Made by a program: the position numbers and the translations under genes
Notes under the pieces: generated by a model
Database searches by the model: none
Told to the model about the DNA's origin: nothing
What the model saw: the letters and a program-made list of their open reading frames with translations, nothing else
Sequence record: PQ657772.1
Length of the DNA: 64,000 nucleotides
Direction: 5' to 3' (one strand)
In this document: positions 13,577-63,059 of the stretch, one piece after another
Numbering within the stretch: the stretch's first letter is position 1
How the letters are laid out: every line of letters starts with the position of its first letter

Positions 13577-13577
13577 A

Positions 13578-13957: not shown

Positions 13958-13958
13958 A

Positions 13959-14141
13959 TTAGTACCTGAATGTTAGCATTACTACGTAGTACAGCATATA
14001 TGGATTATCATCGTATATGAGCGTGTACTTAGTACATTGTTGGAACATTATCTTTGCGTGATCTTTGATACCCAATGCAACGTTTGGTATATGGTGTTGT
14101 AGATGCATTGGGATTTTATCTTTGTAGTATTCTTTATACAT
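13959..14141 (-). CDS. ~60-aa tandem paralog 11/21
   Basis: start moved to MYKEYY. Confidence 0.8.
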   Translation of the reverse strand: MYKEYYKDKIPMHLQHHIPNVALGIKDHAKIMFQQCTKYTLIYDDNPYMLYYVVMLTFRY

Positions 14142-16793: not shown

Positions 16794-16818
16794 GTGTAGT
16801 TCTCCTTATATTCCTTCT

Positions 16819-16847
16819 ATAGTACACCAGTACTGAAAGGGTGTCAA
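16819..16847 (-). promoter_or_regulatory. sigma70 promoter of the small-paralog operon
   Basis: TTGACA-17-TACTAT with AGTACT in the spacer. Confidence 0.8.
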
Positions 16848-16864
16848 GGGTTTTCTTTAGGAGG

Positions 16865-16896
16865 TAAATATGATATAATGAATAAAGGAGGGAAAT
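16865..16896 (+). promoter_or_regulatory. TAAATA-N3-TATAAT promoter plus RBS of propeller gene 1
   Basis: TAAATAtgaTATAATGAATAAAGGAGG. Confidence 0.7.
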
Positions 16897-18045
16897 ATGT
16901 TACCTTTTGTTAGAATGTTTGATTATGGGAATGAAGCACCTACCAACTCTGGGCGTTTTAAAATATATTCCAGTGATTCTATGTATCTTCATGATACTTA
17001 TACTGACAAGTTGTATGCATCTTCTGCGACGAATTGGGGTACTGGTACAGGTGTAGCATCGAGTAAATTTATTCTTTGTGCGGAGAATGTTAAACGAGTT
17101 CTATTGGAAGATAACAGTAGTGATTGTCAATTGTATGAAGAGAAAGGTACTGGAAAAGTTTTTATCACTGGTAACACGAAGGCATTCACTGGTGTAACTG
17201 ATAGAAAAACTTTGTGGACGGACTGTACTACGTGGATAACATCAAGTGGTATTAATGTTTCTGATATAAAATACATGAGTAGTTTTTATGATATGAAGGT
17301 GAATTTGATAACAAACGATGGTACATTGTATTGTTGTGGAGCTAACAATATATCGAACATATCATCATTTGGTGATGGCACAAACATTAATTCTTTTAAC
17401 ACATTCAAAAGAGTAGATACTATAACTTCGGTTAAAAAGGCAGTTGGTAACATTTATTTGCGAGAAGATAATACTTTATGGGGTTGTGGTTTTAACTATT
17501 ACTACCAGTTGGGCACGGGTAATCAAACTTCTATTACTGGGGTGACGATGATTTCTTCGGATGTTATAGATTTTAATGTAAGTTATCAGAGTACATTTTT
17601 TATCAAATCGGATAATAATTTGTACGCTTGTGGTAAACAGTTCGGTGCACAATATGGGAACGAATTTGGTACAGGTGGTACTTCCTCTTCTACTGATATA
17701 CAATATAAAACTCCCACATTATTGAGTGCAGGTGTTTATAGTTTATATACTTGTGTTGGTAACATGGCATCACATATAGTTAAAGGTGATGAAGTACTTT
17801 ATGCATCTGGAAGCAACTCGTCTGGTCAATTAGGTGTTGGTAATAATAATAATCAGTACTCCTATACTCCTTCATATACTTCGTTTAATACCTCTTGTAA
17901 TTTGGTACGCACCCCATCTGGTTCACTTATACTTACTGATACTGGAAAATTATATTATTGTGGCCTTGCAATAGTAGTAATGGGTGGTATTTCTGGACAG
18001 AACGTTCTTAATTATACAGAAGTCGATATGTCATTTTTGCAGTAA
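16897..18045 (+). CDS. RCC1/BLIP-II-like beta-propeller protein 1/13
   Basis: MLPFVRMFDYGN tag; LWGCGFNYYYQLGTG and LYASGSNSSGQLGVG repeats. Confidence 0.85.
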   Translation: MLPFVRMFDYGNEAPTNSGRFKIYSSDSMYLHDTYTDKLYASSATNWGTGTGVASSKFILCAENVKRVLLEDNSSDCQLYEEKGTGKVFITGNTKAFTGVTDRKTLWTDCTTWITSSGINVSDIKYMSSFYDMKVNLITNDGTLYCCGANNISNISSFGDGTNINSFNTFKRVDTITSVKKAVGNIYLREDNTLWGCGFNYYYQLGTGNQTSITGVTMISSDVIDFNVSYQSTFFIKSDNNLYACGKQFGAQYGNEFGTGGTSSSTDIQYKTPTLLSAGVYSLYTCVGNMASHIVKGDEVLYASGSNSSGQLGVGNNNNQYSYTPSYTSFNTSCNLVRTPSGSLILTDTGKLYYCGLAIVVMGGISGQNVLNYTEVDMSFLQ

Positions 18046-18053
18046 ATTAATAT

Positions 18054-18112
18054 GCCAGTACTTGATACTGGCTTTTTTGATTAAATATAGTATAATGAAT
18101 AAAGGAGGAAAT
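18054..18112 (+). repeat. terminator-promoter-RBS junction cassette
   Basis: GCCAGTA-CTTGA-TACTGGC + T-tract + TAAATATAGTATAATGAATAAAGGAGG. Confidence 0.85.
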
Positions 18113-19222
18113 ATGTTACCTTTTGTAAGAATGGTTAAGTACGGGAATATTGCACCAGTACCGAAAAAAATAAAGAAAGTTATAGCAGGATATGATAATT
18201 TATATGTACTATATGGTGATGGTTCGCTATATGGTTGTGGAATCAATAACTATCAACAGTTAAATATTAATGGAACTGCTACACAAAATAATTGGGTACT
18301 AATTACCAATGGTGTTAGTAATGCATGGGCTGGTGGATACAATATTTTATATTTGAAAGAAGATAAATTTATAATGCACGGAACTAATGTCTCATTAGGT
18401 TTAGGAAATACTACAATTCCATTAGGTGGAGTAGATGTAACTTCTTCATTCCCAGATATCTCTAATATTAAAATGATATCCATTGGTTTTGATTCAATGC
18501 ACTATGTTAGTGCTGATGGTACAACTGTATATGGAAGAGGTATGAACACAAATGGTTCTGTTGGTTCAGGTAGTACTTACTCACAGAGTACTTTCACTTC
18601 AGTACTGAATAATGGAACTAATCAGGTTATTGATATATTTGGTAACGTTAATAATACAGTGCTTCTAACATCGAATGGTGAGCTTCGAGCATGTGGGACA
18701 AGTGCTTATGGTTCTATAGGAAATGAAACTGGTAAGTGGACATCGTTTGGTTTAAAATTATCTGGCACTAAAATAATGGGTGGTAATGGGTATAGTACGC
18801 TTGCATATACAAATTCGGGAATGTACCACTCAGGGTGGCAGTTAAATGGGGAACTAGGAAATGGTTTAGATACTAACGTACAGGTATATCCATTTCAATT
18901 TAACTCTAAAACGATAGATAGCAAGATAGATAAAATTGCCAAATCATCATCTGGGTCATATGTTAACATGTACTCAACAACAGAAGGAAAGATATATACG
19001 ACAGGTTCGTTTGGTAAAAACGGGTCAACTACTGCATTGAATTTGTTCACCAATACATTAACACTTATAAATTACAATCCAGATACCGCCTCGTTGTATA
19101 CGTGCACAAACTTCAGTGTTGTGTATGATGGTAATGAAACTATTGCTGTAAGTGGTAGTCCTACATATGTACCAGGGGGCGTTGCCGCTAATAGATGGAC
19201 TACAATTCCATTACCCAAGTAA
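18113..19222 (+). CDS. RCC1-like beta-propeller protein 2/13
   Basis: start moved to MLPF; LYGCGINNYQQL and SGWQLNGELGNG repeats. Confidence 0.85.
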   Translation: MLPFVRMVKYGNIAPVPKKIKKVIAGYDNLYVLYGDGSLYGCGINNYQQLNINGTATQNNWVLITNGVSNAWAGGYNILYLKEDKFIMHGTNVSLGLGNTTIPLGGVDVTSSFPDISNIKMISIGFDSMHYVSADGTTVYGRGMNTNGSVGSGSTYSQSTFTSVLNNGTNQVIDIFGNVNNTVLLTSNGELRACGTSAYGSIGNETGKWTSFGLKLSGTKIMGGNGYSTLAYTNSGMYHSGWQLNGELGNGLDTNVQVYPFQFNSKTIDSKIDKIAKSSSGSYVNMYSTTEGKIYTTGSFGKNGSTTALNLFTNTLTLINYNPDTASLYTCTNFSVVYDGNETIAVSGSPTYVPGGVAANRWTTIPLPK

Positions 19223-19228
19223 TACTAT

Positions 19229-19293
19229 GCCAGTACTTGAGTACTGGCTTTTCTTTTTGATTAAATATAGTATAATGAATAAAGGAGGGAAAT
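19229..19293 (+). repeat. terminator-promoter-RBS junction cassette
   Basis: GCCAGTACT-TG-AGTACTGGC + T-tract + TAAATA-N3-TATAAT. Confidence 0.85.
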
Positions 19294-20415
19294 ATGTTAC
19301 CTTTTGTTAGAATGTTTGATTATGGAAATGAAGTACCTGATCCTAGTTCGGGATTTCGAATAATAAGTACAGGAGACGCATTACTATTAATTACTAAGAG
19401 TGGTGATTTGTGGGTGCGTGGTTATAACCGTTATGGCAAGTTAGGTATAGGTAATAACACCACTACCTATGTACTTGATTGGACGAAGGTTAGAAGTGAT
19501 GTGAAGTTTGCGTGTGGTAGTGGATTGGTAACAGTTATCTTTACTAAGGATAATCGTATATTGTACTGTGGTGACAAATGGTTTGAAACGGGTGGTGTTG
19601 GTAGTGCACAGATTTTCACATGGACAGATGTTACGCATCAATTTGGGGTAGTAGATTTGAGTACTGTAAGGGATATGAAAATATCTTATTACGCGATTGG
19701 GTTAGTTACTACTAATAATCAATTATACGCTAAGGGATTTGATAATAACCTATCATTTGGTGGGGTTACTAATAAGGCGACTGCTGTGTTTATTGCGAAT
19801 AATGTACAAGAGTTGTATACGAGTTTAGTTAGTACTATCTACGTTGATACAAGTGGTATATTACATCGTTGTGGCATGAGTGATAACGGTTCGTTGGGTA
19901 ATAATGGTAGTTTAACTTCGTATCTAAGTTATTCACAGCCTGGTATGACGATTAAGGACATTGGAATGATGACTACGAACACTGGGTTATTATATACTGA
20001 TTCTAGTGCACGAACGAGATATTTTATTGCTGGACAGAACTTGAATAAACAGATGGGTAATGCGGCGGCTGCGAGTGCCATTACGAGTACTTACACAGAG
20101 CTTTCTGGTAGTGTTGATAAGTTTTCTTCTTTATGGGAGAATGATGGGATATTGATGACATTTGCTGTGGGTAAGAACACTAATCAGTTATTTTATGCTG
20201 GGACGAATACTTTTCATGCGAGTGGTGGTGAATCTTCATATGCGGATACATATGAGTTAGTTCCGATGGTGTTTAATGACATACAGGAAGTGTTATGTGC
20301 ACAGCGTTTATCGGTGGTACATGATTCTACGAAGTGGTATTACTGTGGTGATGCTAATTCAATGTATGGTTTACCGGACGTAAGTACTTTTACTGAGTTA
20401 CCGTTGCCCTTTTAA
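19294..20415 (+). CDS. RCC1-like beta-propeller protein 3/13
   Basis: tag; LWVRGYNRYGKLGIG. Confidence 0.85.
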   Translation: MLPFVRMFDYGNEVPDPSSGFRIISTGDALLLITKSGDLWVRGYNRYGKLGIGNNTTTYVLDWTKVRSDVKFACGSGLVTVIFTKDNRILYCGDKWFETGGVGSAQIFTWTDVTHQFGVVDLSTVRDMKISYYAIGLVTTNNQLYAKGFDNNLSFGGVTNKATAVFIANNVQELYTSLVSTIYVDTSGILHRCGMSDNGSLGNNGSLTSYLSYSQPGMTIKDIGMMTTNTGLLYTDSSARTRYFIAGQNLNKQMGNAAAASAITSTYTELSGSVDKFSSLWENDGILMTFAVGKNTNQLFYAGTNTFHASGGESSYADTYELVPMVFNDIQEVLCAQRLSVVHDSTKWYYCGDANSMYGLPDVSTFTELPLPF

Positions 20416-20421
20416 TAATAG

Positions 20422-20488
20422 GTCAGTACTGAAATATGTACTGGTATTTTTTGTAAATACTGTATGATTTAATTACGGAGATTTTATT
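20422..20488 (+). repeat. variant terminator-promoter junction
   Basis: CAGTAC..GTACTG hairpin; TAAATActgTATGAT; GGAG RBS. Confidence 0.75.
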
Positions 20489-21670
20489 ATGTTACCTTTT
20501 GTTAGAATGTTTGATTATGGGAACGTCGTTGAGCCACCTGTGGGTACACGTTATACCTGTAGTGACTATAGTGCGACTTATAGTTTAATAAAGGATGGTG
20601 TGTTATATGTATCTGGGATGAATAACTATTATCAGTTAGGTAATAACACTAACGTAACACGTTACAACGAGTGGTTAAAAGTTCCAGAGACTGATAGTGT
20701 TAAGTTTTGTAGTACTGGTTATAGTCAGACAATGTATCTGACTAACAATGGTAGGATAATGATAGCAGGTGAAGATCCTACTTCCAGTGCGACGGCGGTA
20801 AGTGTAAAGGTTTGGACGGATATAACTTCTAGATTTCGTGCAGTTGATACTAAAAAGATTGTTTATATTTCAATAGAACGTTATGGTGTAATGATGATCA
20901 TGGAAGATGGTTCAGTATGGGCGTGTGGTGTTGATAATACTGGTTGGAGTGGACAAGGGAGTAAGACTGTTGGTTTCTTTACTTTCAGACAAATATACAC
21001 CGGAAGTGCAGGAAGTGCAGTTGCTTGTACTGCTGGTACTGGCACTTCGAGGATTCTATTAGTTGATGGTACAATATTGTCCTCTGGTACTAATACATAT
21101 CATCAATGTAATGCTAGTACTGATCTGGCTGTTCTAACATACACTGAATCATTCCCTGGGGTTGATCCTTCATTGATATATCAAGTCAAGATGTGTAATA
21201 ACAACTGTATTATATTCTTGAGTGATAAGAGATATTATGGTACTGGTTGGGGGAGTTTTGGTGCTTTGGGTGATGGTGATATTTCGGGTTCGAATAATAA
21301 ATTCTATGCTGGTACATTGTCAGTTGCTCCTAAAAACATGCGTGCTTATATGTCGTATCTATGTAGTTCTGCTGGGGATTCTAGTATGTACATAGGCGAT
21401 GATAATTTCATATACACCTGCGGTTATCGTGGGAGGAACTTAATAAATGCCACTACAGATATTGGGACGTTCACGAAATGCATTCAAAGTGCACAAGGAT
21501 ACAAGAATGGACTTATATATAGTGGGAATTATTGTGCTGTAGTTTTTGATCCAGATTTGGGTTCAGGAATGACATATGCGGTTTCATCACCAAAAGTGAA
21601 TGCACCAGCACCACAGGCGAGTGTTCCAACATTGGGTATGAGTTCGTTACAAGCTATTATTTTACCATAA
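20489..21670 (+). CDS. RCC1-like beta-propeller protein 4/13
   Basis: tag; LYVSGMNNYYQLGN. Confidence 0.85.
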   Translation: MLPFVRMFDYGNVVEPPVGTRYTCSDYSATYSLIKDGVLYVSGMNNYYQLGNNTNVTRYNEWLKVPETDSVKFCSTGYSQTMYLTNNGRIMIAGEDPTSSATAVSVKVWTDITSRFRAVDTKKIVYISIERYGVMMIMEDGSVWACGVDNTGWSGQGSKTVGFFTFRQIYTGSAGSAVACTAGTGTSRILLVDGTILSSGTNTYHQCNASTDLAVLTYTESFPGVDPSLIYQVKMCNNNCIIFLSDKRYYGTGWGSFGALGDGDISGSNNKFYAGTLSVAPKNMRAYMSYLCSSAGDSSMYIGDDNFIYTCGYRGRNLINATTDIGTFTKCIQSAQGYKNGLIYSGNYCAVVFDPDLGSGMTYAVSSPKVNAPAPQASVPTLGMSSLQAIILP

Positions 21671-21675
21671 CATTA

Positions 21676-21745
21676 TACCAGTACTGAAATACGTACTGGT
21701 ATTTTTTTGTAAATACATTATAATTATTATATGGAGATTTTAGTT
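21676..21745 (+). repeat. variant terminator-promoter junction
   Basis: TACCAGTAC..GTACTGGTA; TAAATAcatTATAAT. Confidence 0.75.
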
Positions 21746-22876
21746 ATGTTACCTTTTGTTAGAATGTTTGATTATGGGAATACAGTGGCTGCTCCCACTG
21801 GTATAAAGGATTTCCAAGCAAATGGAAGCCACTGTATGGCACTAACATATAGTGGTGAGATGTGGGCTTATGGTACAAGTACAAGTGGATCAATGGGAAC
21901 CGGATTCACGGTGGGTGCTGCTGATAAGGGTTGGTACAAGTCTAACATTAGTAATGTTAAATCATTCAGTTCTAATATGCAGACTAGCACAGTGGCTTTG
22001 ACAAATGATGATAGAGTGCTAGTTTGTGGCTCAACTAGATTTGACAAATTCAGTACTCCAGATATTGCATCATCTAACCTTGATTGGTTGGATGTTACTG
22101 ATCATATTCCACAGGAAGTTATTGATGCTGGGATGAAGCAAGTTATTAACCACGCATATTATGTTGCCATTTTTACTGAAAACAATCTATTATATAGTGT
22201 GGCATTATCTTTGGGTAATACTAGTACTATAATAGATAGAACATGGCGAAGAAATACATTTGGTGATATACAAGTTGAACGTGTTGTTTCGTTGACACAA
22301 ACCCCAAGTGGTCCTTTGTGTATAGTTCAAGATGCAGACGGATACCAGTATGGTATTGGATATAATGGTAATAAGATTATTGATAATACTTCCACTAATT
22401 CATATTCTGTATATACCAAAATGGGTACACTTCCTTACAATGAATTTGCCATATCGAATAGCGGGAAATTCAGTTCAGCGGTATTATCAGACGGGAGAAG
22501 TGTTTATAGTGGTACATTTCCAAAGTCATTCAATAATAGTTTTGGTTCATTTTTGAAAGTTGGTGCGGTATCAGATACTGTGTTTGGTTTAGATGCAAAA
22601 AATATGCGTGGTCAATATGGTCAAAATCAATTACCAATTGCGGCGGCTGATAACAATGCAAGTAATGGCGTTGTTAACCTTCGTAATGTTCCAGCGGGAA
22701 CACAAACGAAAGACATTCGATTTATATGCGGAAATGATGTAAAGAACGTTTATATCATATACACAAATGAAGACGGCATTAGCTCATTTTATGGATTGGG
22801 ACCAAACTTTGATCAAAATTCCTCAGCATATGCACAATTCGTCAAAGTGGATTTGCCAGGGGCATTATTAAATTAA
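21746..22876 (+). CDS. RCC1-like beta-propeller protein 5/13
   Basis: start moved to MLPF; MWAYGTSTSGSMGTG. Confidence 0.8.
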   Translation: MLPFVRMFDYGNTVAAPTGIKDFQANGSHCMALTYSGEMWAYGTSTSGSMGTGFTVGAADKGWYKSNISNVKSFSSNMQTSTVALTNDDRVLVCGSTRFDKFSTPDIASSNLDWLDVTDHIPQEVIDAGMKQVINHAYYVAIFTENNLLYSVALSLGNTSTIIDRTWRRNTFGDIQVERVVSLTQTPSGPLCIVQDADGYQYGIGYNGNKIIDNTSTNSYSVYTKMGTLPYNEFAISNSGKFSSAVLSDGRSVYSGTFPKSFNNSFGSFLKVGAVSDTVFGLDAKNMRGQYGQNQLPIAAADNNASNGVVNLRNVPAGTQTKDIRFICGNDVKNVYIIYTNEDGISSFYGLGPNFDQNSSAYAQFVKVDLPGALLN

Positions 22877-22886
22877 GGAGAGAAAT

Positions 22887-23996
22887 ATGTTACCTTTTGT
22901 TAGATTGTTTGATTATGGGAATATCACACCTGGTCCTAAAAATATAATTAAAGTTGGTGCTTCTACACAGGGTCAATTCTTATTGACAGATTCACATGAT
23001 TTATATTACATAGGTAGAAATCAAGGTGGTGAATCTGGAAATGGAAATACCAACACAGTATCCTCATGGATATTAGTAAGTACAGATGTTTCTAATTTTT
23101 TCGTGGGTGATCGTACACTTGTTATTATTAAAAATGATAATACGATATGGTCATCAGGTCAAACGTACTGGTTCACATCTTCCACAACTACTTCTTACAG
23201 TACTGTATTAGTTGATAGAACCAGTTGGTTTACCAATGCCATACCAGTAAGTGAAATTGCTGATATAGTATGTTCGTATGGTTTAATATTTGTACTTAGC
23301 ACTAGTTCAGTACTCTATGGTGCAGGGGCTAATGGATATCGTGGTGCTTTAGGTATTGGTTCATCATCAATTTACACATTAACTCAATGTGCTACTAATG
23401 TGCGTAAAGTAATGACGAATGCAAATGACAGTATGTATATTACATTAGATAATAAGTTATATAGTTCTGGGTGGAATGACCGTGGATTACATGGCACAGG
23501 GAACAGAACACAAGTTAACATTTGGGGACTGCGTAGTTCTGGTGTAATAGATGCAGCTATTGGTGGACATACACTCAATTACTATAATGGTACATCATAT
23601 TTCACATGTGGTACAACTCCAAACTTTCTTAGTTCAGATTCAACTACATTCAAAGCAGTTCCTGTAAGTACTTTACCTAATAATTCACCTTTGTTTATGA
23701 CAAATTCAGAGGCAACAAGCACGGCTACGCAAATTATATTAACTAGTGCATATCAGAAAGGTATTGGGGGAAACCGTGGTTTGGGATTAAACAATTCTCA
23801 AACGGGTGCTATCTATAGTGCTGCTAATTTACAATTACCTGTAGAAGTTAGTGAGATTAGTGATGTTGCTTTTAGTGACGGATTAACATCATTATTAACC
23901 AAAGACGGGAATGTATATAGTACTGGATCGTATTACGCCATTCCAGGTGCAAGTGCAGATGTTGCAGTCTTTACTAAAATTGATTTACCAAAATAA
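22887..23996 (+). CDS. RCC1-like beta-propeller protein 6/13
   Basis: tag; LYGAGANGYRGALGIG; no own promoter (coupled to gene 5). Confidence 0.85.
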   Translation: MLPFVRLFDYGNITPGPKNIIKVGASTQGQFLLTDSHDLYYIGRNQGGESGNGNTNTVSSWILVSTDVSNFFVGDRTLVIIKNDNTIWSSGQTYWFTSSTTTSYSTVLVDRTSWFTNAIPVSEIADIVCSYGLIFVLSTSSVLYGAGANGYRGALGIGSSSIYTLTQCATNVRKVMTNANDSMYITLDNKLYSSGWNDRGLHGTGNRTQVNIWGLRSSGVIDAAIGGHTLNYYNGTSYFTCGTTPNFLSSDSTTFKAVPVSTLPNNSPLFMTNSEATSTATQIILTSAYQKGIGGNRGLGLNNSQTGAIYSAANLQLPVEVSEISDVAFSDGLTSLLTKDGNVYSTGSYYAIPGASADVAVFTKIDLPK

Positions 23997-24002
23997 CATA
24001 AT

Positions 24003-24066
24003 GCCAGTAATCTGTACTGGCTTTTCTTTTTTGTTAAATATAGTATAATGAATAAAGGAGGAATAT
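24003..24066 (+). repeat. terminator-promoter-RBS junction cassette
   Basis: GCCAGTA..TACTGGC; TAAATA-N3-TATAAT. Confidence 0.85.
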
Positions 24067-25246
24067 ATGTTACCTTTTGTTAGATTATTTGATTATGGGA
24101 ATATTGCCCCTGTCAAAGATACTGTTGTTAAAATTAATAGTGATGAAAATTCAATAAGCGTATTATACAGTGATGGGTCATTATATATGCGTGGACGGAA
24201 ACCAATCAGCAAAAATGGGAGTTACTGGTTCATCTTTTTTGGATAGATGGGTTTTATGTCCTTATAGTGTTGATGATTTCTGGAGTTCTCTATATTGTAC
24301 TATAATTAGAACAAAACAAGGGGAATTGTACTATAGTGGGACTAACTCAGTTTTTGGTATATCATCTTCGGTTTCAACATGGACTCGTTGTGAATCATAT
24401 TTTGGATCTATTTCTCCGAGTTCAATAAAAGATATAAAAATAACATCATCAACCGGAACTAACAATTCCATGTTAATACTAACAAGTGACGGGCAGTTAT
24501 ATGGTATAGGCATGAATGGTGCAAGTGAATTGGGTACAGCAACTGCACCAATTACATCTCCACTCTTAATTGACACTAGTGTATCTGCAATTGCATCTAG
24601 TGAAATGAGCAGAAACTTTCACTATATAAAAGATGGTATATATTATCGTTGTGGTGAGAATACTTTTTATCAATTAGGAACCGGTGATAATAAGCCTATT
24701 ACTAGTTTTACTGCATTGAATCTTGGTAGTTCTCATGTAATTGCAGTACAAGCTACACGATGGGTAACACGTTTGATTGTTCAAAGTAGTACATCTGCTT
24801 TGTCTTTAATGGCGGCTGGTTGGAACACACAGTTGACTATAGGTGGTTCTGAAAATACTGGTATAATAAGGTCATCATTTACTACCAATCCCTATACCGA
24901 TATAACAGCAAATTCATTCGATAAACTTTCACCAGTATCCTATGTTAATGCAATAAAATCCAGTACTAACATTATTAATACGAATGGTAAGGGATATAAT
25001 TCTAATGGTGCTGGTTTAGGCCGCAACGCAGTCTCTGGGAATTATGGTTCAATATTACCAATAGAATTCTTTGATGATAGTGTTGACTTATCACATGTTG
25101 AGTGGTTTGGTACGATTGGTAATGGTTCAGTATCGGTAGTTAGTATAGGTGAGGATTTATACTGGACTGGAAACCCTGGGTATTTTACTGAACAAGGTGA
25201 GACTGGATATATATATAAATTCAAAAAGTGCGTTCCTTTTAGATAA
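24067..25246 (+). pseudogene. RCC1-like beta-propeller 7/13, frameshifted (+1 A at 24199-24201)
   Basis: MLPF frame stops at 24246; removing one A gives LYMRGRNQSAKMG and joins ORF 24170-25246 (392 aa); could be a sequencing error. Confidence 0.8.
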
Positions 25247-25250
25247 ACAC

Positions 25251-25316
25251 AATGCCAGTACTCAAGTACTGGCATTCTTTTTGATTAAATATAGTATAAT
25301 GAATAAAGGAGGAAAT
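25251..25316 (+). repeat. terminator-promoter-RBS junction cassette
   Basis: AATGCCAGTACT-CA-AGTACTGGCATT; TAAATA-N3-TATAAT. Confidence 0.85.
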
Positions 25317-26471
25317 ATGTTACCTTTTGTTAGAATGTTTGATTATGGGAATGAAGCACCTGTACCAGTTGGTATAAAGATGGTAAAAGTTTTACAGAAT
25401 AATGTGTTTATTTTATTAGAAGACGGAAGGTTATATGGCAGAGGGCATAATTTTTACTATCAATTAGGTACTGGTAGTAGTTCTCCTACTATAGTTGAAG
25501 AGTGGGTTTTATGTTTAACTGATGTAAAGGAATTTTGGACTACTGGTGATACACAAGGAATATTAGTACGTAAAAATGATGGCACATGGTGGAGTACTGG
25601 TACTCAAATCTATCGTGGTGTTAATACTACTTATCGTGTATGGACAGAAATACTTGGTATTTTTAATAATGTGAATGACACATATAGTAAAATAGTTATA
25701 GGAAACGGCGTTACATTATTATTAACAATAGATAATAAATTATATAAGATGGGTGACAATAACAACGGTGAAGTTTTTACTGGGGCTGTTGGACAAAGAG
25801 TATCAGTACTGACATTGACCCCAGAAGTTGATGTTAAAGATATTGGTGTAACCGCGAATAATGCTTCATTTGTATTATACAATGATGGAACATTAAAGTA
25901 CAGTGGGAATAAATCTAGTATTGGTTCGACTGGTACAACTACCACAACTACCACATTGACTACTGTTACTACTGGAGTATTACAGATAAATTCGGAAAAT
26001 GCATATAGTGCTAATTACGTATTAAAGAGTGATGGGCTATATGTATTCGGTTCACAAATAGATGGACAGTTGGGTGATGGCACTGATGGCACTATTAACA
26101 GTCTTAGAACAATCACAAAGATACCAGCTTCTAGTATTCCTAGTACTGCGATTGATTACATAGGTGGTTCTAATTATGAAGCACACGTTAGAGCAGGTGG
26201 TATATGGTATTTCGCTGGGCGTGGAAACGCTTCTGGAGATGGAATAACGAACTCTAATGTTATTAAAACATGGCGTGCATGTACTAATATAACTGAACCA
26301 GTTCCATATGATAAAATGACACATGGTTATATGATAACATTCATGTTAAAAAACGGTGAATTATATGGTTCAGGGAATGGTAGTAGAACTGCTGGTATGG
26401 GTACAATTCCGTATGAAGAAGAAAATGCCGGAAATACAGGATTATTTAAAAAAATAGTTACACCGAGTTAA
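25317..26471 (+). CDS. RCC1-like beta-propeller protein 8/13
   Basis: start moved to MLPF; LYGRGHNFYYQLGTG and LYVFGSQIDGQLGDG. Confidence 0.85.
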   Translation: MLPFVRMFDYGNEAPVPVGIKMVKVLQNNVFILLEDGRLYGRGHNFYYQLGTGSSSPTIVEEWVLCLTDVKEFWTTGDTQGILVRKNDGTWWSTGTQIYRGVNTTYRVWTEILGIFNNVNDTYSKIVIGNGVTLLLTIDNKLYKMGDNNNGEVFTGAVGQRVSVLTLTPEVDVKDIGVTANNASFVLYNDGTLKYSGNKSSIGSTGTTTTTTTLTTVTTGVLQINSENAYSANYVLKSDGLYVFGSQIDGQLGDGTDGTINSLRTITKIPASSIPSTAIDYIGGSNYEAHVRAGGIWYFAGRGNASGDGITNSNVIKTWRACTNITEPVPYDKMTHGYMITFMLKNGELYGSGNGSRTAGMGTIPYEEENAGNTGLFKKIVTPS

Positions 26472-26477
26472 AATTAA

Positions 26478-26547
26478 AATGCCAGTACTTGAGTACTGGC
26501 ATTTCTTTTTTTGATTAAATATAGTATAATGAATAAAGGAGGAAAAT
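26478..26547 (+). repeat. terminator-promoter-RBS junction cassette
   Basis: same architecture as the other junctions. Confidence 0.85.
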
Positions 26548-27738
26548 ATGTTACCTTTTGTTAGATTGTTTGATTATGGGAATATCACACCTGAACCTCT
26601 TCTAATTAAGAAAATAATACCAACTGATACTGATGTGGTTGTACTTTATACTGACGGTCAACTATACGCACGAGGAAATAATAGTTATGGGAAGTTCGGT
26701 CGCGGAAATAATAATGCAGTAAGGTCGTGGACATTAATTAGAGAAAATGTCAAAGATTGCTGGATGACACAAGGAACTTTGTTAGTTCAAGATAAGGACT
26801 TAAATTATTTTTATTGTGGATATGGTGGTCATATTGGTTTAGAAACTAGTACTACATCATTTTTAAGTTATAACCAATATATTGAAAATTTGTACACACA
26901 AAGTTCAGGTACTTCAATTAAACAGATGTATGCAGGTACTACGTGGTTTACTTTCTTAATGGATAATAATACAATATGGAGTACTGGTTGGAGTGGGGCT
27001 AGACAATTCGCTGATGGTACTGGTAGTACTCAACAAATAACAGATGGATCATTTGTAAAAGCTGTCACGCCTAATGTTGATATTGCACGAATACAGTCAA
27101 CAAATAGCTGTGTAATGTTTTATGATACACAAAATAATTTATATATTGGTGGTAGTACATCAGGTATAAGTACTACTGATACATGGACTCCATACAATCA
27201 ATATACTTTATATCAGCCAAGTACAACATATACAAAAACATTACAATATGTTGTATGTACAATTGGTGCAGTCAGTGCTTTAGTGGAGAATCCAAGTACA
27301 GGAGCACGTCAGTTCCTAGTGGGTGGGAACGCCAATAATGGGGCATGGGGTAATAACACTACGTCTAGTACAGCACGAGCAGTATTAGGAAATAATAGTA
27401 CAACCTTACCACCCGGTACTTTGTATTCAATTCATACTGGATACCCAGCACAATCTAGTATACTAGTTACGAGTTCTGGTGTATATGCAACAGGTTTAAA
27501 TGCGAGTAGTTATGCTGGTTCATTGGGTGTTGGTTCTAATGTTACCATTGGTAAATTTACTGCATGTCCATTGCCGTCAGAAATAACATATTCTATGTAT
27601 GATAAAATAAAAATATATCGAGGGTCGTTACGTACTTTCCTAACTGCTGATATGAAAAATATATATTCAACCGGAACTTATGATGATGGTGGTCCTAGTA
27701 CAAATAGATATGTACTTGACACTCCAAGACAACTATAA
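26548..27738 (+). CDS. RCC1-like beta-propeller protein 9/13
   Basis: tag; LYARGNNSYGKFGRG. Confidence 0.85.
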   Translation: MLPFVRLFDYGNITPEPLLIKKIIPTDTDVVVLYTDGQLYARGNNSYGKFGRGNNNAVRSWTLIRENVKDCWMTQGTLLVQDKDLNYFYCGYGGHIGLETSTTSFLSYNQYIENLYTQSSGTSIKQMYAGTTWFTFLMDNNTIWSTGWSGARQFADGTGSTQQITDGSFVKAVTPNVDIARIQSTNSCVMFYDTQNNLYIGGSTSGISTTDTWTPYNQYTLYQPSTTYTKTLQYVVCTIGAVSALVENPSTGARQFLVGGNANNGAWGNNTTSSTARAVLGNNSTTLPPGTLYSIHTGYPAQSSILVTSSGVYATGLNASSYAGSLGVGSNVTIGKFTACPLPSEITYSMYDKIKIYRGSLRTFLTADMKNIYSTGTYDDGGPSTNRYVLDTPRQL

Positions 27739-27745
27739 CAATAAT

Positions 27746-27812
27746 GCCAGTACTTTGTACTGGCTTTTATTTTTTTTTGATTAAATATAGTATAATGAAT
27801 AAAGGAGGAAAT
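27746..27812 (+). repeat. terminator-promoter-RBS junction cassette
   Basis: same architecture as the other junctions. Confidence 0.85.
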
Positions 27813-29000
27813 ATGTTACCTTTTGCAAGAATGGTTAAGTACGGGAATAAAGTCATTCCATATGTTCCCAATTTTACTAAATTAGTCACCCCAGCAGTTG
27901 GTTATTCATTTACATGCACAATGCTGCTTGATGTAAATGGATCAGTGTGGGCTATGGGTCTTCAGAATGCAGGAATTTTTGGGTTAGGTAATACTACACA
28001 GGTTACTGAATGGACAAAAATATATAACAATGTTAAAGATTTTTGGTGCAGCACGGGGAATGGTTTTTGTCTAATACGAACAAATGATGATAGATTCTTT
28101 TATAGTGGTTTAGATAAATGGCTAGGTAACAATACAACAAATACTGTAACAACATTCACTGAATGTACGAGTTATTTTACACAATTTGGTATTTCAAAAA
28201 TCAAAGAGATATATGTAGGTCTTGATTATGCTTTGATTTTAGGTACTGATAATAGTTTATATTTGTTAGGTGATAATAAAAATTCAAAGTTTGGTTTAAA
28301 CACTGCATCATATTTTAATAAATTTACATTTTTAGTCGATAATGTTAAAAAATTCTGTTCATCCATCACACCATCTAACTGGATTATTAAACTAGATAAT
28401 ACAATATGGCGTACTGGGACAACATCTCATGGAACGTTGGGAAATGGAGTTCAAAACACATATATATTTCCTTGGGTTCAATATAAGGGCACACCTGTTA
28501 CCGAAGCTATAGACGTTTTTTGTAGTGCGAGTTATATTGGTATTATAACTAAAGGTACACCAGAATCATGTCCTATGTATACACTAGGCTATCAAGCTGA
28601 TGGTCAGTTGGGTAATAATACTACAGCAGGGGGTTATAAATTAACGCCAACATTATCGAAAACCGTTCCAGATGATAGTGAATTCATTCGAATTGAAAAC
28701 ATCTCATCCCGTGGTCTGGTATATTATAGCTCTGGTAAAATTTATAGTACTGGTTATAATAACAATGGTCAGTTGGCAAATAATACTAAAATCAATTCTG
28801 GTTCATTTGTTGAAGCAATTTTACCTAATGGTGTTAACTTTAAGAAAAGTGAATCACTTGTAGCTGGGAACGATGCAACGTTGTATATGTACATTAATAA
28901 TAAATTATACTACGCGGGGAAATCTCCTGATAATATTTCAGCAAGTAGTTCGTCTGTCATGAAAGAATTCCCACTTCCAACAATTAATGCCAGTACTTGA
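27813..29000 (+). CDS. RCC1-like beta-propeller protein 10/13
   Basis: start moved to MLPF; IYSTGYNNNGQLAN; stop codon lies in the terminator loop. Confidence 0.85.
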   Translation: MLPFARMVKYGNKVIPYVPNFTKLVTPAVGYSFTCTMLLDVNGSVWAMGLQNAGIFGLGNTTQVTEWTKIYNNVKDFWCSTGNGFCLIRTNDDRFFYSGLDKWLGNNTTNTVTTFTECTSYFTQFGISKIKEIYVGLDYALILGTDNSLYLLGDNKNSKFGLNTASYFNKFTFLVDNVKKFCSSITPSNWIIKLDNTIWRTGTTSHGTLGNGVQNTYIFPWVQYKGTPVTEAIDVFCSASYIGIITKGTPESCPMYTLGYQADGQLGNNTTAGGYKLTPTLSKTVPDDSEFIRIENISSRGLVYYSSGKIYSTGYNNNGQLANNTKINSGSFVEAILPNGVNFKKSESLVAGNDATLYMYINNKLYYAGKSPDNISASSSSVMKEFPLPTINAST

Positions 29001-29051
29001 TACTGGCTTTTCTTTTTGATTAAATATAGTATAATGAATAAAGGAGGAAAT
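28989..29051 (+). repeat. terminator-promoter-RBS junction cassette
   Basis: same architecture as the other junctions. Confidence 0.85.
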
Positions 29052-30401
29052 ATGTTACCTTTTGCGAGAATGGTTAAGTACGGAAATAAAGTTGAAGCCT
29101 CTACTGTGAAGAAATTCGACTCCATTGGTATGGGTCATGATAGGAATGGTGGTGGTAATTGGTTTGGTGCAATATTAGCATCAAATGGAAATTTATATGG
29201 TATTGGTCAAACAAAATATGTTTCTTTTGGTATAACACCAACCAATGGTACAGGAATTGAATTAGTACGAAAAAATGTAAACAATTTTTGGCTACTATCA
29301 AATGGAATAATAGTTAAAGATAATGATGGTTCATATCATTTTTGTGGTGTATATGCAAATGGAATATTCACACATTCAAGTATAACTACAGCACCTTTTA
29401 TAACAAATGGTTTTATAAATGTATCTTCTTATTTTTCTAACGTAGGTGAAGTTGTGGAAATGGTATTCTGTGGTGGATATGATAAAGGTCCAGCAACATC
29501 ATTAACCCCAGCATACACTTCAAAATATAGTTGTATTTTGGCAGCATTGAACACTAATGGTGAAATCTGGTATATGGGTTTGTCGATTCAAGGTTTAATA
29601 AACAACTCCACATCAGATTACTACTTTACTTCTTTTACTAAAGATAATCAATTGACACAAAAAGCAGTTTCATTAAGATGCACAATAGACATGTCACATA
29701 ATAATGTGTATTTTGTTGGTAATAGACCTGTACTTTATGCCAAATTAGAAGATGGTACAATCGTAGGTAAGGGATATAATATACGATATGGTATACAAAA
29801 ACCAGCTAGTACAAACCAAGTGATTAAAACGTGGACTACAGTGGCTGTAATCGGAACAGCAGATGATTTTGATGCAACAAACGAAGGCATGATGTACTGC
29901 TCAAATTCACAACTATATCGCTGTGGTAATGGTGGTGGTTTTTCTTTCTGGAATGGTACAAGTAGTGTGTATTATATGGGCTACAACGTTGGTATGTTTC
30001 TAATCGGTGCGAATGACGTCAACCGTGTAGCGGGTGGTTTTAACGTCCTAACTACAGGGATTAAAGATGATGTAGGTATAAATGTACCAACTTCATCCAG
30101 TACCAAAATACGAATGAACTACTGTGGAACTGTAATTTTTGAACCCGGAACAACATCAATATATAAAGCACATGGTGTTTATAGTGATTACTATGCTAGT
30201 CCTTCATGGCAAGCGGGTGCAGTCGCTTCATTTACATATGAAGACATTGGTATTAAAATCAAAGATGCTATGTATGTTGGTGGTACTCTTGGGTTTACAA
30301 CATATGGATTATTAGTGGTTAGTACTGAAGGTAAGGTATATTGGAGAGGTGTGTACAACGGTGTAACATATCAAACACTCACAGAAATACATTTGTTGTA
30401 A
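29052..30401 (+). CDS. RCC1-like beta-propeller protein 11/13 (most divergent, 449 aa)
   Basis: start moved to MLPF; SNGNLYGIG and TEGKVYWRG blades. Confidence 0.8.
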   Translation: MLPFARMVKYGNKVEASTVKKFDSIGMGHDRNGGGNWFGAILASNGNLYGIGQTKYVSFGITPTNGTGIELVRKNVNNFWLLSNGIIVKDNDGSYHFCGVYANGIFTHSSITTAPFITNGFINVSSYFSNVGEVVEMVFCGGYDKGPATSLTPAYTSKYSCILAALNTNGEIWYMGLSIQGLINNSTSDYYFTSFTKDNQLTQKAVSLRCTIDMSHNNVYFVGNRPVLYAKLEDGTIVGKGYNIRYGIQKPASTNQVIKTWTTVAVIGTADDFDATNEGMMYCSNSQLYRCGNGGGFSFWNGTSSVYYMGYNVGMFLIGANDVNRVAGGFNVLTTGIKDDVGINVPTSSSTKIRMNYCGTVIFEPGTTSIYKAHGVYSDYYASPSWQAGAVASFTYEDIGIKIKDAMYVGGTLGFTTYGLLVVSTEGKVYWRGVYNGVTYQTLTEIHLL

Positions 30402-30407
30402 TATAGT

Positions 30408-30471
30408 GCCAGTACAGAGTACTGGCTTTTCTTTTTGATTAAATATAGTATAAAGAATAAAGGAGGGAATT
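30408..30471 (+). repeat. terminator-promoter-RBS junction cassette
   Basis: GCCAGTAC..GTACTGGC; TAAATAtagTATAAA. Confidence 0.8.
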
Positions 30472-31605
30472 ATGTTACCTTTTGCAAGAATGGTTAAGTA
30501 CGGGAATATAAAAGTAAAGAGTACTATCCAAAAAGTTATCCTTGGTGGTGGTCAATGTGTGGTAACATTACTCAGTGATGGTAGAGTGTATGGACGTGGT
30601 TACAACACTACACATGGGTTAGGTACTGGTACAACAACATTCGTAAGTGATTGGGTATTAATGGGAGATAATATTGTTGATATCCATTCAAATGGTGTTA
30701 CTGGAACATTCCTTATTACCAAAGAAAATAGAATATTGTATTCTGGTTTTGCGACACCAATCAATGGCACAACATCACATTATACACGTTTCACTGATTT
30801 AACATCAACTGTATTTGCTGCGGTGGATGTTAGTAATATTAAAACAATTACGGGAAATGGTAATGTTACAATGGTTCTTTTGAATGATGGTTCACTTTAT
30901 GGGAGTGGTGCAAATACAGGGGTTATAGGTAATGGTAGTAACGTTGCATTATCAACACAAACATATGTGACTAATGATGTGCGTGATGTGAAAACATATC
31001 CATCAATGAACACTATAACAAAAAATAATAATCAAATATTGGCTAGTGGTATTTTATACCAAGGCGTGAACGGTACAAATTCATCAATAAACACGTCTTC
31101 ATATACATTACTGTACACATTACCGAGTTCTGATTGTTTTCAATTTGCATTTGATACATATACATTTGGATATGTTGACCCTAGTACTAACACTTCTTAT
31201 ATAAGAGGTATACCAATAAATGGTTCATTAGGTAATGGCGTTACTAATAATACAGCAGTTACAACATGGGTTACTAAAGTTTGGAATACACCAATTGATA
31301 GTTCTATACCTAATAAATCATATACAACTAACCATGTCTCCTTGTTCAATGATGGAAACTTATGGACAACTGGTGCATCTAGTGTAGGTTATTCCAATGG
31401 TACAAATAGCACAACAGCTAATACATGGACCAGTTCATCTAATTTACCATTCAACACTAATAACATAACAGACTATGCTTTTGGTGGTAGTATTACTGTA
31501 GTGGTAATCGACTACAGGACTATGTACATACTAGCTAACAACGCCATTGCTGGTACTGCTACGACAACTTATAAATTTGAGCCATATAATTCTCCACCAG
31601 TTTAA
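30472..31605 (+). CDS. RCC1-like beta-propeller protein 12/13
   Basis: tag; VYGRGYNTTHGLGTG. Confidence 0.85.
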   Translation: MLPFARMVKYGNIKVKSTIQKVILGGGQCVVTLLSDGRVYGRGYNTTHGLGTGTTTFVSDWVLMGDNIVDIHSNGVTGTFLITKENRILYSGFATPINGTTSHYTRFTDLTSTVFAAVDVSNIKTITGNGNVTMVLLNDGSLYGSGANTGVIGNGSNVALSTQTYVTNDVRDVKTYPSMNTITKNNNQILASGILYQGVNGTNSSINTSSYTLLYTLPSSDCFQFAFDTYTFGYVDPSTNTSYIRGIPINGSLGNGVTNNTAVTTWVTKVWNTPIDSSIPNKSYTTNHVSLFNDGNLWTTGASSVGYSNGTNSTTANTWTSSSNLPFNTNNITDYAFGGSITVVVIDYRTMYILANNAIAGTATTTYKFEPYNSPPV

Positions 31606-31612
31606 TATAATT

Positions 31613-31638
31613 CCAGTACTATGTACTGGCTTTTCTTT
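31613..31638. terminator. terminator between convergent genes
   Basis: CCAGTAC-TAT-GTACTGG + T-tract. Confidence 0.7.
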
Positions 31639-32288
31639 TACATATTATATAATGTGAATGCAGTCACTTTACCAGTTGTTGTTAGTTCATTATAAAGATA
31701 CTCCAAGATTCTCGCACACTCTAAGTATATCTCGATATCATCATGAATAAGTGAGTACTGAAATAGCTGTTCTTCAGATAATTTGTATTGACTTCCTTTT
31801 AATGAATTGAGAATATCTTTCACATCATCAAGTACTGGGTAAAGTACGAAATCTTCATCATATTTTGAAGCAATAAATTCAAATCCACCACCATCAGTAC
31901 TAGATATACCAATCAGTACTTTATCAATCAAGTTAATGTTTATATAACGGTTGTGATTTGGGTGAATTGAAATCTCAAACATAAGAGTACTGTTACAATC
32001 AACATCAATATACAAATATACATCATTGAATTTATAAGTTAAGCAACCGTACTCAAGAAAATCAGAGCAAATAATTGATGAGTTTTTTCTCGTCTCTGCG
32101 TAATGCATCTTGATATTCTTTTCACGCATAAGTAATTCGAACTTTGCACTAAACTTGCCACCAGCAAGATAGTTAGTATTAGGACGTTTGTAACTTGCAA
32201 CTGGTCGGTGGGATGATGTAAAGTATTTTTTTGTGAATCGTTTATGTTTAGTGAAATATTCTTGATAGAACTTACTTCTTTTATTCAT
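31638..32288 (-). CDS. hypothetical protein, dispersed EExF(Q/M)xS(L/I/T)(I/V) family
   Basis: LSEEQLFQYSLIHDD; GAGG RBS; antisense insertion in the propeller array. Confidence 0.8.
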   Translation of the reverse strand: MNKRSKFYQEYFTKHKRFTKKYFTSSHRPVASYKRPNTNYLAGGKFSAKFELLMREKNIKMHYAETRKNSSIICSDFLEYGCLTYKFNDVYLYIDVDCNSTLMFEISIHPNHNRYININLIDKVLIGISSTDGGGFEFIASKYDEDFVLYPVLDDVKDILNSLKGSQYKLSEEQLFQYSLIHDDIEIYLECARILEYLYNELTTTGKVTAFTLYNM

Positions 32289-32365
32289 GAGTACCTCAAT
32301 TAAATCGCTGTAAAATTGTACATTATAAAATGATTAAATAAAGTATAACACAAGGAGATTTTATC

Positions 32366-33490
32366 ATGTTACCTTTCGTATTGTTATTTGATTATGGGAA
32401 CGAAAAACAAGAAAGTTCTTATGATGTTAGTGTATATGGAAACAATAACTACATTTTAAATAAACAAACTGGAAACCTTTTTGCATCCGGTGCTGCGGCA
32501 TTCATGGGTGATAACACAGTTAAGTATTATATTACCCAAATAGAATCAAATGTTCATAGCTGTGAGATAGGTTTCCTATCATCATGGATAATTAAGAAGG
32601 ACAAAACTGTTTTCATTTTAGGAAACAAAAGCAGTATTGGATTAACTGATTCGACAACATCATGGTTCGAAATTACAAACTTATTTTCTGCTGTTCCTGA
32701 AATATGGGACAACCTATTTGAATGTAAAGTTCAATTGGGATATAACTGCATACGTGTTATGACACCACTAGGATCAATATATGCGATTGGTACAAACACT
32801 TATGGTGCATTGGGTACTGGTACTACATCCTCATCCACTTCGTTCGTTAAAAGTGGTGCTGTGGATGCTGTACGCATGGAATCAACAGAACGTTCAGTGT
32901 TCTATCAAAACAGTTCTGGACAATGGTTTGGATGTGGTGATAACACATATGGTATACTAGGTCTAGGAACTACCGCTAGTCGTGTAAACTCATACACCGC
33001 ACCAGTATGGACTAATGCAGAAGCTGTTAGCTTCTCTAACCGTGGAATCATATACAGCCTCAATGGTACTCTATACTCATGTGGTGACAAAGTTAATGGT
33101 CAGCTAGGGGATGGATATACACAAAGCATAGACGCAGCCAGGAGCACACCATACACCATAGGAACCGCATTCCAAATTGGTAAGGCAATAACATCAGCTA
33201 CACAAGCATCAGCCAACGTATTCATTGGTAAAGATAATAAGTTCTATGGTACTGGTAGTATTGCTGCTGGTATAAATGGTAGTACTAGTGCTGCATTAAG
33301 TAAAGTTACTGCGTTATCAGCAGCACTACCACCTGACATTACATACAATGATATTATAACATTCAATACAGGGACCGTAACTTTTATTCAAGCAAAAGGA
33401 CAACTATATTATGTTGGTAGAAGAACTTACATAGATAATAGTTCAGACGTTACCACACAGTTCAGTGTAATTGGTGGCTTAGATAATTAA
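32366..33490 (+). CDS. RCC1-like beta-propeller protein 13/13
   Basis: MLPFVLLFDYGN; WFGCGDNTYGILGLG and LYSCGDKVNGQLGDG. Confidence 0.85.
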   Translation: MLPFVLLFDYGNEKQESSYDVSVYGNNNYILNKQTGNLFASGAAAFMGDNTVKYYITQIESNVHSCEIGFLSSWIIKKDKTVFILGNKSSIGLTDSTTSWFEITNLFSAVPEIWDNLFECKVQLGYNCIRVMTPLGSIYAIGTNTYGALGTGTTSSSTSFVKSGAVDAVRMESTERSVFYQNSSGQWFGCGDNTYGILGLGTTASRVNSYTAPVWTNAEAVSFSNRGIIYSLNGTLYSCGDKVNGQLGDGYTQSIDAARSTPYTIGTAFQIGKAITSATQASANVFIGKDNKFYGTGSIAAGINGSTSAALSKVTALSAALPPDITYNDIITFNTGTVTFIQAKGQLYYVGRRTYIDNSSDVTTQFSVIGGLDN

Positions 33491-33494
33491 AATT

Positions 33495-33525
33495 AATCCA
33501 GTACTATTATAGTACTGGATTTTTT
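33495..33525. terminator. bidirectional terminator
   Basis: AATCCAGTACT-ATTAT-AGTACTGGATT between convergent blocks. Confidence 0.8.
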
Positions 33526-33526
33526 A

Positions 33527-63044: not shown

Positions 63045-63059
63045 TAAATACGTTATAAT
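63045..63059 (+). promoter_or_regulatory. TAAATA-N3-TATAAT promoter
   Basis: same motif as upstream of the propeller genes. Confidence 0.65.

Follow-up and report, generated by a model that had tools for sequence, protein, structure and literature searches.

How can a row of paralogous genes differ over most of their length and nevertheless begin almost identically, down to their synonymous codons and the regions which precede them? The question is raised by a gene array in an E. coli jumbo phage, Escherichia phage EC.P1 (PQ657772.1), which belongs to the 121Q/Asteriusvirus group. The window analysed here corresponds to bases 1-64000 of its genome of 356,444 bp, whose genes lie almost all on the minus strand; the array constitutes a plus-strand island at 16897-33490, and its 13 genes (369-449 codons, proteins of ~40 kDa) match the Pfam families RCC1 and RCC1_2, the RCC1-like domain and phrog_4219. 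Indeed, RCC1 or RCC1_2 repeats scored above the Pfam cut-off in four of six array genes tested, the whole-domain model WD40_RLD remaining under its cut-off in these six. From the analysis of the junctions between these genes we propose that each of them probably acts as a composite module, at once regulatory and recombinational, in which a terminator, a late promoter, a ribosome site with a coding tag and a site of recombination are brought together.

Junctions of the gene array

A junction extends over about 110 bases and comprises a putative terminator, a predicted late-type promoter, a ribosome site and the first 12 codons of the following gene, these conserved codons (MLPF-x-RM-xx-YGN) being hereafter called the tag. 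A hairpin, a T tract, a box resembling TAAATA-N3-TATAAT and AAGGAGG are found in 10 of the 12 junctions between array genes (Table 1). Variant junctions belong to genes 4, 5 and 13, and genes 5 and 6, which are separated by a tight junction with neither hairpin nor promoter, are presumably co-transcribed. The junctions were aligned over the 110 nucleotides (nt) 5' of each start codon and the first 48 coding nt. Pairwise identity between paralogs amounts to 88% at -75..-1 and again to 88% at +1..+36, and falls to 59% at +37..+96, which is the value obtained for random 75-mers of the genome; over the gene bodies it averages 63% in nucleotides and ~25% in protein. Clearly, the near base-for-base likeness which a first-pass annotation of the bare sequence had ascribed to most junctions is borne out, and it stops shortly after the tag.

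The conservation includes synonymous positions. TTA and CCT follow the start codon in 13 of 13 genes and TTT in 12 of 13, in line with the earlier statement that TTA CCT TTT is fixed in 12 of 13 genes, and further on AGA is used in 12/12 and GGG in 11/13. The genome-wide relative usage of these codons is low (TTA 0.28, CCT 0.33, AGA 0.18, GGG 0.08) in comparison with their near-complete use in the array, so that codon bias cannot account for the fixed synonymous sites. Genes 6 and 9, for which about 46 common 5' bases had been noted, have exactly 46 identical bases counted from the ATG, and other gene pairs hold exact shared runs of 50-55 nt spanning the start codon.

The promoter element was likewise confirmed as first described, TAAATA being placed 3 nt before TATAAT, and a sigma-70 scan (80 sites against 93 expected) found no qualifying -35 at any junction TATAAT, in agreement with the reported absence of a -35 box. 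Allowing one mismatch at most, the window contains TAAATA-N3-TATAAT 16 times, where shuffled sequences give 3.66 ± 1.83 matches. Twelve of the 16 are the promoter sites 5' of array genes, and a 13th match lies inside the array on the plus strand, past gene 12 (31639). Outside the array, the whole 356-kb genome contains 13 matches on both strands, which is not above the 14 of a control pattern; for this lack of enrichment, the exact motif as a genome-wide promoter class was rejected. Similarly, CCAGTA-loop-TACTGG is found 12 times in or ending the array and once elsewhere in the genome, and all 13 genomic occurrences of ATG TTA CCN TTY are array starts. The hairpin, the exact two-box pairing and the MLPF start are thus almost confined to the array. 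A scan of IMG/VR for the 27-nt junction core returned a match in 121Q only.

Cassette exchange and uniformity of the 5' codons

Arrays were compared between EC.P1 and its relatives fEgEco12, CMSTMSU, vB_Ec-M-J, Turkey3, Ecwhy_1, 121Q, phAPEC6 and G17, CMSTMSU being excluded from the junction statistics as a low-quality record full of frameshifts. Cassette types, named by letters, were defined by clustering gene bodies at at least 80% identity and depend on this threshold. So defined, the nine genomes hold 12-17 cassettes each, belonging to 41 types in total and standing in differing orders. The order is partly conserved (A ... B ... C ... E F) amid losses, gains, replacements and moves: the type A cassette is the fifth in G17, and phAPEC6 contains a tandem two-cassette duplication, Y-P-Y-P. 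The entry junction is kept in 9/9 genomes, and the cassette next to it is of type A, I, ad or an.

The breakpoints of this variation were determined by Megablast of EC.P1 against the complete genomes of the eight relatives. All 44 internal block ends fall in a junction, within -80..+54 of a start codon, and 0/44 inside a cassette body. In a few cases the exchange can be placed more narrowly. In Ecwhy_1, cassette D stands behind the junction of cassette J, the J context being matched up to +31 and the D context from -1: this indicates that J would have been lost (or gained) by a crossover within the shared first 32 coding bases, whose partners in EC.P1 are 19294-19325 at the left (genes 2/3) and 20489-20520 at the right (genes 3/4). 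In both fEgEco12 and Ecwhy_1, cassette N is found behind the junction of cassette M (EC.P1 genes 4/5), with a left end within the first 13 coding bases. Tight junctions devoid of a hairpin bound exchanged cassettes as well. As read from genome comparison, whole cassettes have evidently been swapped, lost, gained and duplicated at the junctions, and with 41 types, 44/44 ends at junctions and mapped crossovers the earlier proposal that the junctions are homology islands allowing cassette swap, loss and gain is well supported.

Two considerations lessen the weight of the block ends: their position at junctions is partly expected, as alignments extend into any conserved junction, and crossovers within cassette bodies could go unseen if chimeric propellers are selected against. 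Metagenome contigs which break or join at junctions were not counted as recombination, since repeats longer than the assembler word length give the same picture, and they were ambiguous as to mini-circles excised by exchange between neighbouring cassettes, a feature of the PeSL elements discussed below. Cassette 7 (type T) carries a frameshift which is also found in Ecwhy_1, with 1 difference in 1184 nt between the two records; it may be a pseudogene, a sequencing artefact common to close records or a gene requiring frameshifting.

Exchange of bodies does not by itself tell how the 5' codons are kept alike, and here the comparison of orthologs and paralogs is informative. The tag exists chiefly in two versions, ...RMFDYGN (with TAT) and ...RMVKYGN (with TAC), with synonymous choices linked to the version. 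The first version is found on types A, B, C and L within the EC.P1 clade, while in the 121Q clade these types have the second or a third one. In fact, over +13..+36 orthologs from different clades differ on average by 5.0 nt, against 3.8-4.1 nt for paralogs of the same genome, and for 97% of ortholog pairs a closer match than the ortholog exists among the paralogs of the same genome. Cassettes A, P and C, which stand side by side in G17, have one common 5' version there, and this version is absent from A and P of 121Q and phAPEC6. These results show a concerted evolution of the 5' codons within each genome, due to gene conversion and not to independent selection site by site.

That each part of the junction has a plausible function, and that the tag peptide is conserved even in an Erwinia phage (see below), would also be compatible with selection on every part alone, without any recombination between junctions. 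We regard this as highly improbable, because rare synonymous codons are fixed (GGG being the extreme case) and synonymous variants go along with tag versions, because the hairpin stems are identical in sequence and show no compensatory variation, and because orthologs in other genomes have other 5' versions. The explicit recombinants of Ecwhy_1 and fEgEco12 contradict it directly, barring misassembly at repeats.

Hairpins and predicted promoter of the junctions

Folding energies of the junction hairpins range from -8 to -17 kcal/mol, and on the coding strand each hairpin has a T tract behind it. Being G+C-containing hairpins with a T tract at gene ends, they are putative intrinsic (rho-independent) terminators; terminator-like sites number 27 against 6.0 ± 2.4 expected. 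Their stems are built on a word of wider distribution. Among the hexamers of the genome AGTACT shows the strongest over-representation, with 975 sites in all three reading frames (8.8 times the first-order Markov expectation), and CAGTACTG has 57 occurrences in the window against 0.95 expected (AGTACT sites, e.g., at 188-62424). The word is present in every junction stem, and many early promoters are also built on it. As a separate observation, the palindromes CCGCGG, CCCGGG, AGGCCT and AGCGCT have 0 occurrences in all 356 kb, which fits restriction-site avoidance.

The hairpins are found to flip between close relatives. For four hairpin variants the exact reverse complement is found as well, and at two orthologous junctions an inversion of the hairpin is the only difference, namely at T|K (25251-25276 in EC.P1) between EC.P1 and Ecwhy_1, and at G|C between fEgEco12 and vB_Ec-M-J (L021 and L023). 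One of the inverted hairpins has its stem imperfection inverted too. Such exact inversions indicate that the junction palindromes are apparently processed at the DNA level, and template switching or cruciform resolution could be the flipping mechanism. One may then ask whether the hairpins are primarily DNA sites, (C)AGTACT(G) palindromes bound or cut by a phage factor and serving as recombination hot spots, with termination as a secondary role. The abundance of AGTACT and CAGTACTG, the presence of the word in every stem and the flips all fit this possibility, which we nevertheless consider quite improbable: the T tract behind each hairpin on the coding strand is the standard layout of a terminator, such hairpins of the G17 array are already on record as terminators called by ARNOLD, no reader of AGTACT is known, and exchanged cassettes are also bounded by the hairpin-free tight junctions.

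With respect to the promoter, the first box leads to a class of sites that extends beyond the array. Over the whole genome, TAAATA has a third of the frequency of hexamers with similar composition. In upstream gaps outside the array its density on the sense strand is 2.65 per kb, ~10 times the genome-wide value of 0.26 per kb, and these gaps contain 43 sense against 10 antisense sites. ATAAATA is the most enriched upstream 7-mer, 36 of its 49 genomic copies lying in upstream gaps. Tail or virion genes, as assigned with PHROGs, stand behind 16 of the 20 TAAATA sites tested, and include sheath, two tube genes, baseplate hub and wedge, and fibres. A TATA lies 3-5 nt 3' of TAAATA in 18/43 non-array sites, so that the looser form, TAAATA with TATA at N3-5, is the general one in the genome, and a form close to that of the array stands before the genes for the tail tube and for one tail fibre, and before the virion gene at 63082. 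No deviation from TAAATA is seen at any of the 12 promoter sites in the EC.P1 array, and the word is unaltered in 95/95 hairpin-bearing junctions of eight genomes. A sigma factor of the T4 gp55 family is encoded outside the window. BLASTP against T4 gp55 gave E 2e-4, and T4 gp55 as direct query had no match, whereas the family profiles did match. From these sequence features we infer a promoter of the late class at the junction, in which a second box is conserved as well.

The second box itself, however, allows another reading, in which TATAAT is an ordinary sigma-70 -10 and the array is transcribed early or in the middle period by host sigma-70 or by an RpoS-like phage sigma, perhaps aided by a T-rich upstream tract or an activator, TAAATA being incidental or belonging to a second, late start. 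TATAAT is a perfect -10 hexamer, TATAA is conserved at 95-100% across the 95 junctions, the early promoters of the phage have the same GTATAATG context, and a second sigma gene, RpoS/SigB-like, lies within the window; the idea that the latter product lacks region 4 was rejected, as it aligns with RpoS/SigB over regions 2 to 4. Against this, there is neither a -35 box nor a TGn extension at the junctions, the products are virion proteins, and the two boxes are arranged alike in front of the tail tube and tail fibre genes. Sigma-70 depends critically on the last T of TATAAT, which is replaced by A or C in 16 of the 95 junctions, whereas TAAATA is invariant in all of them. On balance we hold transcription by a sigma-70-type factor to be unlikely, though a possibility to be reckoned with.

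The assignment to the late class meets some difficulties of its own. The base 5' of TAAATA is T or G in the array, and is A in 30/43 and T in 1 of the other sites. The GTATAATG context, being also the -10 context of the early sigma-70 promoters, could allow use by host sigma-70. No gp33 homolog was found in the genome by a phrog_254 search, which a very divergent homolog could escape; gp33 orthologs have been reported in this phage group (PMC7824862). The raw RNA run X21 has 0 phage reads on 16700-22690, and the genes outside the array were called by a simple custom script. Accordingly, the former suggestion that a phage sigma factor or activator recognises the motif is upheld indirectly, by the late word, the virion genes behind it, the gp55-family sigma and the virion proteins of the array, while TATAAT could still serve sigma-70.

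The composite module that we favour would then work as follows. An intrinsic terminator on the AGTACT word would end the upstream gene, and a T4-type late promoter, consisting of a TAAATA core with a TATA(A/T)T box 3 nt downstream and devoid of a -35, would start the next one, most likely recognised by host core polymerase carrying the gp55-type sigma. This predicted promoter is followed by a strong ribosome site and the 12 tag codons, and each cassette would be produced late as a minor virion protein. The exact repeats of 50-55 nt serve as substrates for homologous recombination, by which, as the genome comparison shows, cassettes are deleted, inserted, replaced, moved or duplicated at the junctions, and gene conversion keeps junctions and 5' codons uniform within a genome.

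The tag, virion proteins and known systems

Six proteins of phAPEC6 detected in virions by mass spectrometry (gp003, 005, 006, 007, 009 and 010; PMC7247149) are array members. The tag is not restricted to RCC1-like bodies: the same junction and tag precede Kelch-repeat genes, one in vB_Ec-M-J and two in Turkey3, and a 245-residue protein with no Pfam family is tagged as well. The tag is thus no requirement of the RCC1 fold, and by analogy with the internal proteins of T-even phages it may direct proteins into the particle. A structure model of gene 2 built from 12 sequences reached a pLDDT (predicted local distance difference test) of only 66, with weak N-terminus and C-terminal half, and renders residues 1-19 as a low-confidence coil, too weak for placing the tag.

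A more distant array of 10 genes was found in the Erwinia jumbo phage Hallingskeid (L036:1039-12059), where the tag reads MIPF-x-RMI-x-YGN. Tight junctions of 10-15 nt predominate in this array; a TAAATA-N3-TATATT promoter is present at three junctions, and two of these three, inside the array, have a hairpin as well. Hallingskeid thus retains the hairpin, TTAAATA, N3 and TATATT although the spacer bases differ, which speaks for the late-promoter reading. No tag was found in gp40 of Salmonella phage PVP-SE1 (L035:3501-5315), which is RCC1-like from its first residue. This protein of an rV5-like phage is annotated as a tail protein and encoded directly 3' of the tail fibre gene, a placement which hints that RCC1-like propellers can be tail appendages.

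We tentatively put forward, as a possibility that falls short of being probable, that the 12-residue tag is a portable signal for incorporation into the virion, and the array a rack of interchangeable propellers (RCC1-like, Kelch and others) which dock at one site of the particle and which the junctions allow to be reshuffled quickly in the contest with hosts. Candidates for the docking site would include the inner body and the hair-like fibres, which are so far unexplained, and the array, expressed from a two-box late promoter, would parallel the T4 internal-protein system on the structural side.

The closest known elements are the PeSL (promoter-early stem-loop) cassettes of T4-type phages (Arbiol et al. 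2010, PMC2839356; Comeau et al. 2014, PMC4122927). In both, a stem-loop, a promoter and a ribosome site are combined in a repeated intergenic element flanking variable genes, and in both indels and replacements between related phages arise via recombination at the cassettes, to which the block ends at junctions correspond here. However, PeSLs have sigma-70 early promoters (-35 and -10) before small early ORFans, whereas the array junctions have no -35 and carry the late word TAAATA, their genes encode proteins of ~40 kDa found in virions of the relative phAPEC6, and the repeat extends 36 nt into the coding sequence. The junctions thus appear to work like PeSLs without being members of that family, since its defining sigma-70 early promoter is absent, and would represent a late-promoter variant that reaches into a coding tag.

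A second likeness is to the internal-protein loci of T-even phages (Repoila et al. 1994), as described in PMC2839356 and PMC3012670. According to these descriptions many unrelated virion proteins have only a short conserved N-terminal leader in common, PeSL-like promoter and stem-loop elements flank the genes, and the locus is highly variable between close relatives, much as seen in the array, where the tag sits on RCC1-like, Kelch-repeat and unassigned bodies and presence in the virion is known from phAPEC6 mass spectrometry. The T4 proteins are described as small, and their leader as a capsid-targeting one that is cleaved off by the prohead protease.

As for the promoter, the T4 late promoter (TATAAATA, with gp55, gp33 and gp45) and the ATAAATA class predicted before structural genes in the related phages CBB and GAP32 (PMC5259590) resemble the array sites in having an A/T-rich word of the -10 type, no -35, and structural genes behind it; as in T4, a gp55-family sigma is encoded by EC.P1. 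CBB has a gp55-like sigma and no gp33 or gp45 homolog (PMC5259590), so that a gp33 homolog was found in neither phage. The array sites differ from this late class in reading TTAAATA or GTAAATA instead of ATAAATA, and from the T4 consensus in their second box, TATA(A/T)T, exactly 3 nt downstream. The multiplicity of RCC1-like genes (PMC7247149) and the ATAAATA late class were thus already on record. In a literature search we found no account of array shuffling or of a transcriptome for the genus, nor of concerted evolution of 5' codons, hairpin inversions or the second promoter box.

Modular shuffling of the PeSL type, earlier known for small early genes of T4-like phages, would hereby extend to a putatively late virion-protein array of jumbo phages. 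Since the unit of exchange includes the first 12 codons, each swapped body would gain the same N-terminal tag. The 11-17 "chromosome condensation" genes of 121Q-like phages become a testable system with respect to targeting by the tag and binding by the propellers, the junctions offer natural landing pads for new cargo in phage engineering, and the two-box late promoter and the flipping AGTACT hairpins provide handles on late transcription and recombination in this phage group.

Table 1. Features of the EC.P1 array, its junctions and related elements (window positions unless a genome or an L-numbered locus is given).
Feature	Position	Strand	Remarks
Array of 13 tagged RCC1-like beta-propeller paralogs	16897..33490	+	open reading frames, Pfam RCC1, phrog_4219, record annotation
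Starts of array genes 1-13	16897, 18113, 19294, 20489, 21746, 22887, 24067, 25317, 26548, 27813, 29052, 30472, 32366	+	
Entry junction	16794..16932	+	divergent intergenic region; hairpin with CAGTACTG, motif 16865-16879, ribosome site, 12 tag codons
Junction of genes 1/2	18046..18148	+	hairpin 18054-18072 (-10.5 kcal/mol), T tract, motif 18082-18096, ribosome site, tag
Junction of genes 2/3	19223..19329	+	hairpin 19229-19248 (-13.2 kcal/mol), motif 19262-19276
Variant junction of genes 3/4	20416..20524	+	hairpin 20422-20445 with 8-nt loop, motif TAAATA-N3-TATGAT
Variant junction of genes 4/5	21671..21781	+	hairpin 21675-21702, motif 21710-21724
Tight junction of genes 5/6	22877..22922	+	10 nt; ribosome site and tag codons retained, no hairpin, no promoter
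Junction of genes 6/7	23997..24102	+	hairpin 24003-24021, motif 24035-24049
Cassette 7 (type T)	24067..25246	+	frameshift past codon 59, remainder open in other frame
Junction of genes 7/8	25247..25352	+	hairpin 25251-25276 (-16.2 kcal/mol), motif 25286-25300
Junction of genes 8/9	26472..26583	+	hairpin 26477-26504 (-17.2 kcal/mol), motif 26516-26530
Junction of genes 9/10	27739..27848	+	hairpin 27746-27764, motif 27782-27796
Junction of genes 10/11	29001..29087	+	hairpin 28989-29007 overlapping the gene 10 stop codon, motif 29021-29035
Junction of genes 11/12	30402..30507	+	hairpin 30408-30426, motif 30440-30454 with second box TATAAA
Putative terminator hairpin 3' of gene 12	31606..31637	+	hairpin 31613-31629
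Conserved gene splitting genes 12 and 13	31638-32288	-	
Gene 13 promoter region (variant)	32289..32401	+	motif 32335-32349, TAAATA-N3-TATAAC; gap common with the divergent minus-strand gene
Putative terminator hairpin 3' of gene 13	33491..33526	+	hairpin 33495-33521 (-15.4 kcal/mol)
RpoS/SigB-like phage sigma, distinct from the gp55-type factor	57339..58307	-	regions 2 and 3 present; alignment with RpoS/SigB extends over regions 2 to 4
Exact TAAATA-N3-TATAAT outside the array	63045..63059	+	23 nt before virion structural gene starting at 63082 (phrog_10468)
gp55-family sigma, outside the window	genome 173629-174468	-	phrog_12791 E 1e-153; phrog_234 (T4 gp55 family) E 1e-17
Tagged Kelch-repeat genes	L023:10738-11643; L024:12256-13203 and 13277-14167		
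Tagged 245-residue protein	L021:25040-25777		no Pfam family

Two further kinds of repeated cassette were observed in the genome. Dozens of near-identical early cassettes stand 5' of small genes in the window at 141-10000 and in the genome at 347-356 kb; in each of them AGTACTTGCA forms the -35, TATAAT follows at a spacing of 17 nt, and a G-rich hairpin comes last, so that they resemble classical PeSLs with the stem-loop past the -10. The other kind lies on the minus strand of the window at 36800-49200, upstream of the genes at 36034, 36872, 41599 and 48705. Here the -35, TTGACT, is placed in the loop of a GGGTTGAC...GTCAGCCC hairpin, which is followed by a T tract and TATAAT, so that terminator and promoter appear to be united in one element.

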